Source of the DNA: Phallusia mammillata
Taxonomy: Eukaryota
DNA: 64,000 nucleotides
Reading direction: 5' to 3'
Assembly: GCA_965637545.1 (NCBI GenBank)
Contig: OZ281495.1
Location: 8,494,001 to 8,558,000 of the forward strand
This document shows, piece by piece, positions 9,624 to 12,600 of the stretch. The stretch's first letter is position 1. Each line of letters starts with the position of its first letter. The notes beneath the pieces are model-generated. The model worked only from the letters and a program-made list of their open reading frames with translations, was not told the DNA's origin and searched no databases. A program made the translations under genes and the position numbers.

Positions 9624-12600
9624 TTATGCTGAAAATCCTTGAAAGGTCTCTCGCAGAATTTGTTCAATTGTATTTGTTGAAACATAGCTCGACGATGCTC
9701 TGAAACAAAGCAATTTTTTTTGTGAAATCCCAACAACATAACCTCAGACGTATAACCAAAAGGTAATAAGCGATATTTGATTTATAATTTTAACTCATCA
9801 AGGTTTTCATTTTAATCAAAGTTTTTACGTGATCCAATCAAAGCACACACACTTAAAAACTCTATGACTTGTGTCCGTGTGTAGTCTATAATCGTATAAC
9901 CAATATGTGCATCGAGTTAAATATCCTGGAGTTGACAGTATTTCGCTTAGAGAAGGTAAGTATGGCACCACAAATACAACATTTTTGGTAAATGTGTGTA
10001 TGCCCAGTCAAACTTTTAGGGTACATACCTACACAGACTATATAAACCTAAAATATTTGGGTCTGGGCAATTGGTATACAATCGGCCCTAAAAGTTTGTG
10101 AATATAAGTCGTTAGGCCTACTAAGTAGAATCATTACGTGGTAGATGTTAGAATATAGTTGAAGTAGACGTTGTGAGCTGTCCCTGACATGCAGACTTTG
10201 TTGTCTGTTTGGTCTGTGTTTTTCTGCGAATCCACATAATGTAGAGAACTGTATCCTGACGAGCCAAGTTTCTAAACCATTAAATATAGGCGTATGTTGC
10301 TGAAGCAGATTTTGGCTTTGAATAAATAGAACCTATGTACACGGTATATATATATATATATATGTATATATATACAACTTTCGTTTAAAATATTAAAGAT
10401 TTGTTTTGTAGTGTTAATATAAGCACATCTTATAATTGTTGTTGGAACCAAAACAAAATCTAAAAAATCACTTATCAACTCAGTGTTATACTTTAGAAGG
10501 TTGCGCTATTCTAAGCATGCAAGCAGCAATAAAGTTTTATACATCTACGTACTGGACTTGACACTGTGAAGAATATCTGTATGATGGAAGGGTCGTCTGT
10601 TCCGTATACTTGATACAACACGTAATGTATGTTGTAAGATCCAACCAATAAAGATCCAGTATTCCACCTATAGCTTCCACTGCCGTCTGCTCCCAGATTC
10701 CCGCTTTCCTGTCAATGTAGTGTTTGAAAATAAAATTTGAAGGTTTAACGTTGACTTTTCAGAACTCCAACTAGTTGACAACACATTTCAGAACTCCAAC
10801 TAGTAATTAACATTTTGCAAAGAAATCCTTGACCTTTTCTGTTGAAGATTCTATTTAAGAAAAAAACGTCTGCAAAACCTATTGCATTGATTTTTAACGT
10901 AGGTGTTATTACACCCTAAATGTTTTTTTGACAATTTTCTTGGAATAACTTAATTAGACTAACATGTTTTTATTTTATGGAAGAAGGATAAATGAAATCC
11001 AAGTTATTATTTACTGCTTTGAAGTCGTGCTTTGTATCATTGACGTTACCTCGATGTTATACTGCCAGGATCTTCCATCAGGATTCAACACCAGCATGGA
11101 TAAGATGAATGGGTGCAACGCTTTACATACCACGGAAAAATAGCCCTGTGGATGGCTAGACAAACGATAAAATTACATATTCCAATAAATCAACTTGAAT
11201 TTGAGTCATAAGCAAAATAATGAACCTTGAGGTCAACAAATGGTTCAGGTGGCACGATTTAAATGTAAGCTTTTGGCACTGAAACTTGTCATGCAATTCA
11301 TATGCCAGTGACATAAATGCAAGCCAGCCACTTTTGTAGTGACCCGTGTCGTGTAAGCCCAGTCAGCTGCCAGTGACACCTGTCATGCTAACCCAGGGGT
11401 TTCCAAACTTTTTGGTCTATGGCCCAAATGTCTATGATTCGTGGCCTACCATGTGCTGTAAATTTGGGCACAAACAACAAAATAACTCAAAAACAGGCGA
11501 AATGGTTTCTAGCAATTTATTTTTAATCAGATACATGCTCCTAAAAATTGGCTGCAAGATTCCGAATTCTTTGCAAACATTATGTTTTTCAAAACAAAGC
11601 GCATAATACCTACAGTATAACAAAACAGCAGAGTCTTGCTCTGTGGCACATTGAAAATGTCTTGATGGCCTAGTACTGGGCCATGGCCCACAGTTTGGGA
11701 ACCACTGTGCTAACCGAAGTAAAACACCCTCGAGCGATTTTAAAATGTTTTTATAACGCAGCAAAAATGTTCTGCAACTGTACGTGGCACTTACTAATAA
11801 TTCGAATTGTAAATGACTTGCACTTTCGGTTCGTTGTTTCTCCAGACTTTCAGCTAAATTAGTAAAAAATAAATTATGTTTACAATTTAAGCTAACTTAA
11901 CAAAAAATAATAGCCTAAAACCTGTTGTTCATTGTTTACCTACGTGTCAACATAGAATCCAGTAAACCTAGTTTGAATTAGCCTACATAACATTGTACCT
12001 TATTTCCTGTGTCATACATATCGTCGCCCCCATCATATATGCTGTAACTGTTTTGTCCGTCGTAATTAAACTCGTAGTAATTGGGCAAACTGCGTGGAAA
12101 AATGCTTGACGAGAAATTGGAAAGTGCATCAAAAAATGAAAAACCTTCAAAAAGTATTTGCTCTTAAAAGATTGTGATTGGATTATAATTGAGTTGAGTT
12201 GAGTTGAGTTGAGTTTATTTCGCCGGTGATACAAATCGTAGCAGCACAATTGCACTAAAATATTCACCAAGCCGGAAATAGCTGCGCAACGTTGGGACGT
12301 TATAAAGCGCGACAAAGGTAAGGGCACAATTGGTGGAAAGATGATAAACGCGCTGCAGCTACACCGTTACTAATAGCGTTATGTGGCAGGGACTCACAAC
12401 GGAGGGTGAGGTTGGCGCATTGGGACATCAAGACTGGGGGGGAAACGTTGGTGGAACCAGCCAGGTTGGGACCTAATCTAAATTATAAGATGAACTTACT
12501 TTGAATTGGGCATTCTCCTTTTGACGCGCTTAGTGAGAGTCTGGTGGACAAGTTTTCTGTTGAGAAAATCGTACGAATGATTAAGAAATATGTTTCTCTT

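Follow-up and report, generated by a model that had tools for sequence, protein, structure and literature searches.

What does the gene G1 of the ascidian Phallusia mammillata carry at its distal end, and what could such a domain be for? The window analyzed here (64,000 nucleotides of contig OZ281495.1, assembly GCA_965637545.1, positions 8,494,001 to 8,558,000) is gap-free, AT-rich animal DNA, and coordinates below are window positions unless another contig is named. A sequence-only reading had proposed that six small exons between 12162 and 9624 encode an unrecognized head domain of a larger gene, G1, with an Asp/Gly-rich motif that could bind calcium or glycan. We conclude that this head is very probably a real, complete and unnamed domain that tops a stalked type II membrane protein. 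The receptor architecture is of a known kind; the new part is the head family.

Exon boundaries were taken from three independent sources: RNA contigs (Logan contigs of same-species runs aligned to window positions 7600-13500), tblastn of paralogues, and splice sites combined with phase. The head is coded by six minus-strand exons, E1 to E6, with AG/GT at every boundary and phases that close. It comprises 221 codons, that is, 662 bases in E1-E6 and one base from the preceding exon E0. Tblastn of two database paralogues, P0004 and P0129, gave six ordered blocks on the window, with identities of 63-98% and 63-87%, respectively. No second copy of the head was found within the window. The exons are, in transcript order:

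12500..12556, minus strand: linker exon E0, 57 nt, final stalk or linker exon ahead of the head, ending with one base of a split codon
11999..12144, minus strand: head exon E1, 146 nt, N-terminal helix and Asp/Gly loop
11795..11853, minus strand: head exon E2, 59 nt, skipped by the junction proposed earlier
11050..11155, minus strand: head exon E3, 106 nt, HPF motif
10553..10708, minus strand: head exon E4, 156 nt, starting point of the family search
10138..10271, minus strand: head exon E5, 134 nt, covered by RNA contig over 10271-10144
9624..9687, minus strand: coding part of head exon E6, C-terminal helix and stop codon TAA at 9626-9624

The RNA contig X1 carries the joints 12500>12144 and 11999>11853, which connect E0, E1 and E2. 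E0 has an AG acceptor and a GT donor and matches the paralogue segment just ahead of the head, E1 is 74% identical to P0004 by tblastn, and E2 is 63-74% identical to P0004 and P0129, with AG/GT sites. The E2 donor would lie at 11795, judging from phase and the sequence GTAAGT. E3 has AG/GT sites and 63-66% identity to P0004 and P0129 (blocks start at 11157 and 11155); both of its junctions, at which the RNA contigs list no joint, are presumed from the window DNA. The E4-E5 joint 10553>10271 (CT..AC on the plus strand) is present in the X5 and X7 contigs, which come from two different studies. E5 is 98% identical to P0004, its donor GT at 10137-10136 being read from the window DNA, and at its end the expressed paralogue has 12 more bases than the window. 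E6 is covered by an RNA contig from 9687 to 9505 behind an AG acceptor and is matched by P0004 and P0129; its 3' untranslated region extends to at least 9505.

This gene model retains much of the sequence-only reading and corrects it at two boundaries. All four motifs singled out there lie on the minus strand in the region proposed: YDGGDDMYDTGN in E1 (12037-12002), LHPFILSM in E3 (11118-11095), and GNLGADGSG and VYGTDDPSIIQIFF in E4 (10702-10676 and 10609-10568). The end at 9624 is exact, being the last base of the stop codon, and the number of exons and their closing phase also hold. The start at 12162 has to be moved 18 bases further in, to the acceptor at 12144 defined by the joint from 12500. 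The proposed junction 11999>11145 is wrong, because it loses 23 residues that both paralogues and the RNA contig include: the RNA joins 11999 to 11853, and the next exon starts at 11155. The length of about 240 residues is reached only when the 57-nt linker exon is counted with the domain. Contrary to the statement that none of the exons was captured in the correct frame among the open reading frames, a list with a 25-residue cut-off does contain parts of three of them in the right frame.

To define the family, exons were searched individually, and P0004 served as a stand-in for the whole head. E4 alone (52 residues) retrieved 104 matches among 1.84 billion proteins, and its ascidian matches (E 1.7e-58 to 2.2e-22) are far beyond chance. 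The true relatives with names, as far as they were looked up, come from four ascidians (Ciona intestinalis, Phallusia mammillata, Clavelina lepadiformis and Styela clava) and are all annotated as 'uncharacterized', which bears out the earlier remark on similar motifs in uncharacterized invertebrate proteins. In most of these ascidian relatives a unit of ~215 residues is repeated in tandem, with 2-8 copies per protein, and some of the proteins have CUB or Sushi domains as well. The domain is also borne by unassigned single-gene transcripts from metatranscriptomes (eukaryote-like P0022, P0083, P0018 and P0076). Bacterial Ig-like repeat proteins (e.g. P0012, P0017 and P0038) were rejected as members, matching only a Gly-rich G-S-G-S-Y-x-W-N-T stretch.

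The alignment A1 contains 40 copies (ascidian, a few unassigned environmental and one phage copy) and yields a profile of 220 positions. N, P and Y occupy invariant columns, and other columns of Y, D, G, I, F, V, E, L and S are nearly invariant. The conserved blocks are YxYDG, IxDGGxDMYDxGN, HPF, GADGxG, DPSICEVYF and YxLLS, and the family motifs read Y-x-Y-D-G ... I-x-D-G-G-x-D-M-Y-D-x-G-N, H-P-F, G-x-x-G-A-D-G-x-G, (Y/I)-G-x-x-D-P-S and Y-x-L-L-S. The window exons fall on the A1 hidden Markov model in order (E1 at 5-46, E2 at 48-65, E3 at 69-99, E4 at 101-150, E5 at 155-196 and E6 at 202-218), and E2 fills exactly the part of the profile that the junction 11999>11145 would remove.

The claim that the domain is unrecognized stood throughout: single exons, whole homologues and profiles gave no match in Pfam-A, NCBIfam, PHROGs or PDB sequences. 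The 40 copies, the whole homologues and the bacterial and phage segments described below produced no Pfam-A, NCBIfam or PHROGs model over the head region, Pfam at E<=1 on the 40 members gave only scattered single chance matches, and neither the ascidian nor the bacterial profile matched any PDB sequence. Three weak candidates were set aside: a sub-threshold Pfam match of single exons to Cas10/Cmr2 palm2 (E 0.15-0.17), taken as chance; PDB sequence matches of E1 and E4 at noise level (e.g. catalase-peroxidase, E 0.3); and Cypovirus polyhedrin in the Ciona protein P0001 (24.6 bits, under the cut-off and unseen in other members). A word-index protein search returned nothing for E4 and E1, its length window excluding full-length relatives, and 3 proteins only for profile A1. 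A literature search found no paper with the motif strings or LOC identifiers of the family. The head family is large but undescribed in every library and in the literature searched, and its span across bacteria, phages and tunicates is unusual.

The sequence-only reading had not foreseen these bacterial and phage relatives. One genome per prokaryotic species was scanned with a pattern from a narrow alignment, A3, and 52 bacterial loci were obtained, belonging to Bacteroidota, Verrucomicrobiota, Cyanobacteriota, Planctomycetota, Zixibacteria, Acidobacteriota and others. The bacterial copies sit in open frames of 560 to more than 2,700 residues, with type IX secretion system (T9SS) sorting tails and TSP3, LRR, HYR, Ig-like, dockerin or laminin-G modules; the carriers are therefore secreted or surface proteins. 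With the database size set to 1.84e9, the A1 profile matched bacterial proteins over the full domain length with whole-protein E-values down to 1e-31 (single copies at best ~3e-16) and a phage protein on contig L001 with an E-value of 2e-47. Alignment of A1 with the bacterial alignment A4 by hhalign gave a probability of 99.7% and an E-value of 6e-26 over 194 columns. On these profile comparisons, the case for homology across the ascidian, bacterial and phage groups is solid.

Some phage copies belong to tail-fibre surroundings. L001 is a 13-kb contig of close-packed same-strand genes, among them those for a tail-fibre assembly protein, a collagen-like tail fibre and the domain-bearing P0101/P0122; the N-terminal part of P0122 matches a baseplate-wedge tail-fibre connector, and the head domain forms its C-terminal part. 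On L003, P0130 is a single-domain protein of 272 residues in a phage-like gene row that adjoins tail-fibre-like genes. A pattern scan of IMG/VR gave nine viral contigs with the domain, and three phage proteins among the predicted viral structures of BFVD match the model (E 3e-11 to 8e-9, template modelling (TM) score up to 0.73, 15-20% identity). As a separate observation on L001, a 2OG-Fe(II) oxygenase-like gene (L001:3618-4196) and a collagen-repeat tail-fibre gene (L001:339-815) adjoin the domain-bearing protein, and this pair may represent a prolyl-hydroxylase and its collagen fibre in a phage.

The predicted fold is a helix-capped beta-supersandwich. AlphaFold2 with A1 modelled P0004:27-250 as an N-terminal helix, ~11 strands and a C-terminal helix, with a predicted local distance difference test score (pLDDT) of 95.3 and a predicted TM score (pTM) of 0.92; a bacterial copy modelled with A4 had the same order of elements (pLDDT 92.1, pTM 0.91). 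When both models were submitted to an exhaustive structural aligner, nearly all of the top 50 rows were galactose-mutarotase-like supersandwich domains, from enzymes of the glycoside hydrolase (GH) families GH65, GH94, GH15, GH116, GH63, GH92 and GH38, from polysaccharide lyases (PL) and from aldose epimerases. The top scores were Z 9.2 and 9.8, with 171-186 residues aligned at a root-mean-square deviation (rmsd) of 3.6-4.0 and 4-11% identity; Z 7-8 is the typical best of this aligner for models without a clear Foldseek match. The resemblance in these models is therefore near the grey zone of the tool, yet consistent between two independent predictions. Neither Pfam on the 40 members nor PDB sequences searched with both profiles gave sequence or profile similarity to the galactose mutarotase-like member families.

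What would such a head do? We propose that G1 is a type II single-pass membrane protein in which E1-E6 form the C-terminal globular head, held away from the membrane by an extracellular stalk of short repeated helical cassettes bearing glycosylation sequons. The N- and C-terminal helices would clamp the supersandwich and bring both chain ends together atop the stalk, an arrangement suited to a knob on a stalk. The head would then act as an extracellular recognition module, because bacteria carry the same domain in giant secreted surface proteins and phages carry it in tail-fibre and baseplate proteins, and because the fold is otherwise known only from carbohydrate enzymes, as an accessory domain in contact with sugar. 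The conserved residues of the head form loops with many Asp, Asn and Gly, as is usual for calcium-stabilized ligand sites, and its invariant acidic and glycine loops may form a metal-stabilized (Ca2+) ligand pocket. The ligand would be external and most likely a glycan, given the phage tips, the adhesin-like bacterial giants, the ascidian CUB/Sushi arrays and the sugar-enzyme fold. G1 would work like a stalked membrane lectin with an oligomeric stalk; the oligomeric state, the metal site, the glycan ligand and the receptor role are putative. We hold this explanation as a whole, a stalked type II protein with an extracellular recognition head and a putative Ca2+/glycan pocket, to be reasonably probable, and for glycan binding by the head the chances appear evenly balanced.

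Two other roles were weighed for the same domain. The head could be a carbohydrate-acting enzyme (a hydrolase, a lyase or epimerase-like) with catalytic invariant aspartates, of which there are several: all structural neighbors come from carbohydrate-active enzymes, aldose 1-epimerases use the fold catalytically, and phage tail proteins often bear depolymerases. We regard this as distinctly unlikely, since the fold is a non-catalytic accessory domain in the GH65, GH94, GH15 and PL8 neighbors, no enzyme family resembles the domain by sequence or profile, and up to 8 tandem copies per protein are typical of binding or adhesion modules rather than catalytic domains. The head could also be a module for adhesion between proteins or for self-assembly, whose calcium site is structural and which lacks sugar specificity; this would suit the tandem arrays, the co-occurrence with CUB, Sushi, LRR, TSP3, HYR and Ig modules and the apparent resemblance of the Asp/Gly loops to structural Ca2+ sites. 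Such a module is unlikely here, as the fold class is overwhelmingly tied to carbohydrates and distal tail modules of phages usually recognize surface glycans.

The stalked recognition head that we favor requires an anchor and a stalk, and the claim that the domain heads a larger gene was upheld by the paralogue P0129. This protein of 374 residues has everything in one chain: first a short tail and a hydrophobic anchor, then helical repeats that carry QHN(L/M)S sequons and extend over ~110 residues, and finally the head. The window contains candidates for each missing part upstream of E0:

18734..18874, minus strand: candidate first coding exon of G1, encoding a short cytoplasmic tail and a type II membrane anchor, 57% identical to the P0129 N-terminus
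~17609, 17211, 17032, 16318 and 14272-14040, minus strand: further stalk cassettes, upstream of the head and on the same strand as the anchor
12742..12795, minus strand: stalk cassette exon of 18 codons, a QHNMS-type repeat with an N-glycosylation sequon

The translation of the candidate first exon has a hydrophobic stretch of ~23 residues. The cassette at 12742-12795 resembles the stalk repeats of P0129 and corresponds to a piece of an RNA contig (12741-12797) with unlike flanks. Strand, order and the architecture of the paralogue suggest that the anchor exon belongs with the head exons, and the stalk cassettes likewise appear to be part of G1. The gene is best read as anchor (18.8 kb), cassettes, E0 and head, an order taken from the DNA and the paralogue.

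The same chassis recurs within the window. Four anchor exons with near-identical tail and anchor are found on the minus strand (18844-18734, 36889-36776, 45120-45007 and 49228-49115), 57-79% identical to the P0129 N-terminus, and additional stalk cassettes are located at 34.3-35.9 kb and 43.8-43.9 kb. Since there are four anchor exons and one head of the present kind, the window holds either several chassis copies or alternative first exons. An open segment at 21600-21418 on the minus strand has a WSC-like cysteine/glycine pattern and adjoins a WSC-like gene array; it may represent a further type of head in this receptor cluster. On the other side of G1, a plus-strand open frame at 3256-3660 matches PF00728, the catalytic domain of glycoside hydrolase family 20 (hexosaminidase), at its C-terminal end (E 1.2e-12), and a plus-strand GH20 gene is therefore located downstream of G1.

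Several observations weigh against the explanation of G1 as a stalked recognition protein, beginning with the transcripts. None of the RNA contigs spans from the anchor at 18.8 kb to the head, and only the E0>E1 step is seen. The absence of an RNA link between 18.8 kb and 12.5 kb would agree with a separate small gene made of the six exons alone, unjoined to the upstream anchor and stalk exons, and P0004 does stand alone as an entry of 250 residues. Nevertheless, E1 lacks an in-frame start codon and its first codon is split across the splice from 12500, P0004 is partial, since its sequence opens within a stalk repeat, and P0129 unites anchor, stalk and head, so that a separate gene is extremely improbable.

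A second difficulty concerns expression of the copy in the window itself, from which the spliced minus-strand contigs differ by 2-6%. The X5 and X7 contigs run to 10144, continue with 18 other bases and resume at 9687-9505, and over E4-E6 their translation is identical to P0004, down to four additional residues encoded by 12 bases that have no counterpart in the window. The window has no match to the 18 additional bases of the expressed paralogue, even with up to 4 mismatches allowed. The X1 contig over E0-E1-E2 encodes a protein 92% identical to the window and 75% identical to P0004. As the window, X1 and X5/X7 differ from each other, there are at least three head versions in the species, either close paralogues or deep alleles. 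A head paralogue is clearly expressed, and expression of the exact copy in the window is likely. The contrasting reading, by which the copy in the window is a paralogue that is silent or decaying, P0004-like and P0129-like genes elsewhere are the expressed ones and an antisense transcript is the real product here, gains from the exact match of X5/X7 to P0004 and from the plus-strand orientation of those spliced contigs that match this locus perfectly. We consider it very unlikely: the six exons are open and in phase, with canonical splice sites and the key residues of the family kept, the identities of the X1 contig fit an allele in a highly polymorphic ascidian, and contigs drop rare variants.

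The other points bear on the head itself. The window exons keep all invariant and near-invariant residues except for two changes, E>Q (IIQIFF) and L>T (YILTS), which P0004 and P0129 share. The fold was modelled on P0004, which is 63-98% identical to the window protein depending on the exon. The comparison suggested by the sequence-only reading, a Foldseek search with an AlphaFold model, could be made with this paralogue and gave no PDB match below E 1e-3 (best E 1.2e-3), and the matches of the exhaustive aligner are at fold level only (Z 8-10), a range that, as the tool warns, can reflect a common arrangement. One viral copy departs from the tail context: on L007 (4519-7761, IMG/VR), the domain is part of a 1080-residue protein whose gene lies outside any tail module, flanked by those for the large terminase and the portal, and this interval is an unusual place for a receptor-binding module. 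Finally, the proposed glycan and Ca2+ role is deduced from fold and context.

Two further features were noted across the head exons. A spliced antisense transcript on the plus strand comprises 7600-7941, 9565-9762, 10761-10898 and 11069-11546 and overlaps E6 and E3. Its GT..AG splices (7941>9565, 9760>10761 or >11067, and 10898>11069) are carried by X1 and X15 contigs from two studies, with 0-2 differences from the window. As an alternative coding reading, these plus-strand exons were rejected: they are stop-rich, and the only long open frame is one of 83 residues at 7597-7848. In RNA-like runs, contig depth at 12131-12524 and 11540-11736 is 10-100x that of neighboring bins, and many contigs continue into unlike sequence; dispersed repeats thus occupy these two segments, one in the E0-E1 intron and one in the E2-E3 intron.

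How a domain shared with bacteria and phages came to head an ascidian protein was considered with a quick maximum-likelihood tree of 94 copies, which is unrooted and includes three phage copies. It separates the 52 bacterial copies from the ascidian, unassigned-transcript and phage copies by a branch of length 1.41, with a support of 99 in the Shimodaira-Hasegawa-like approximate likelihood ratio test (SH-aLRT). Possibly, though we rate it as doubtful, the head was a phage or bacterial receptor-binding module that was horizontally transferred to tunicates and gained introns. In this tentative scenario it would then have been redeployed in secreted tandem arrays and among several exchangeable heads of membrane receptors that share an anchor-and-stalk chassis, so that an animal receptor for surface recognition would in effect be a domesticated phage tail-fibre tip. 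The grouping of the ascidian copies with phage, apart from the bacterial ones, is consistent with such a transfer, as is the observation that the named animal members looked up are all tunicates, with no search of other animal phyla by full profile. A survey of horizontal gene transfer in Ciona, published in 2026, lists eight other gene groups and not the head family (PMC13390645). Its screen applied BLASTP at E<1e-25 against a small landmark set and is stated to miss low-similarity cases (PMC13390645); such thresholds would miss the head family.

If the proposed picture is true, a widespread unnamed extracellular domain spans bacterial secreted giants, tailed-phage proteins (some of them in tail modules) and one chordate lineage, and its confidently predicted fold points to carbohydrate recognition. 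A head of a non-lectin fold would be added to the ascidian stalked membrane receptors with exchangeable heads, which would be candidates for distinguishing self from non-self or for recognizing microbes in an animal that lacks adaptive immunity. To the study of phages and Bacteroidota the family would offer a candidate receptor-binding or adhesion module, and for tunicates a candidate gene transfer beyond the case of cellulose synthase. The head domain is small, folds on its own and lends itself to expression, which makes the binding hypothesis directly testable.

Among known systems, the stalked type II lectin receptors combine a short cytoplasmic tail, a signal anchor, a helical repeat neck and a C-terminal ligand-binding head. 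Langerin, DC-SIGN, CD23 and collectin-12 offer a works-like analogy, limited to their architecture and that of the P0129-type protein. The G1 head is not a C-type lectin domain (neither the exons nor P0004 or P0129 match Pfam Lectin_C), and sugar binding and oligomerization of G1 are only putative. The N-terminal domains of GH65, GH94, GH15 and GH116 enzymes (e.g. 7fe3, 5h3z, 5nz7 and 3wiq) and the aldose 1-epimerases resemble the head in predicted structure (Z 8-9.8, 165-186 residues, rmsd 3.4-4.0). At 4-11% identity, with no sequence or profile signal, their homology to the head is only putative; the head is smaller, with ~11 strands and capping helices, and stands alone without a flanking catalytic barrel.

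The phage proteins (P0122/P0101, P0130 and the BFVD entry A0A8S0HZG8) share a homologous C-terminal domain with every invariant residue, but in the virion module it is fused to a baseplate-wedge connector-like N-terminal part, with no membrane anchor. The ascidian multi-copy proteins belong to the same family and have the same invariant motifs as the window head; examples are Ciona XP_078491493.1 (LOC104266555, 7 copies), Phallusia CAB3263223.1 (8 copies) and the Clavelina and Styela proteins with CUB or Sushi domains. They form long tandem arrays, in contrast to the single head on a membrane stalk proposed for G1, and are 24-29% identical to the G1-type head, which occupies a long branch. Closest of all are the Phallusia mammillata LOC100175507 entries P0129 (374 residues) and P0004 (250 residues, partial). 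These 'uncharacterized' entries are paralogues or alleles and not the product of the window, and P0004 has 4 extra residues ahead of the last exon. Both carry the same head in the same exon-coded segments, and the type II anchor and QHN(L/M)S-repeat stalk of P0129 are also encoded in the window.

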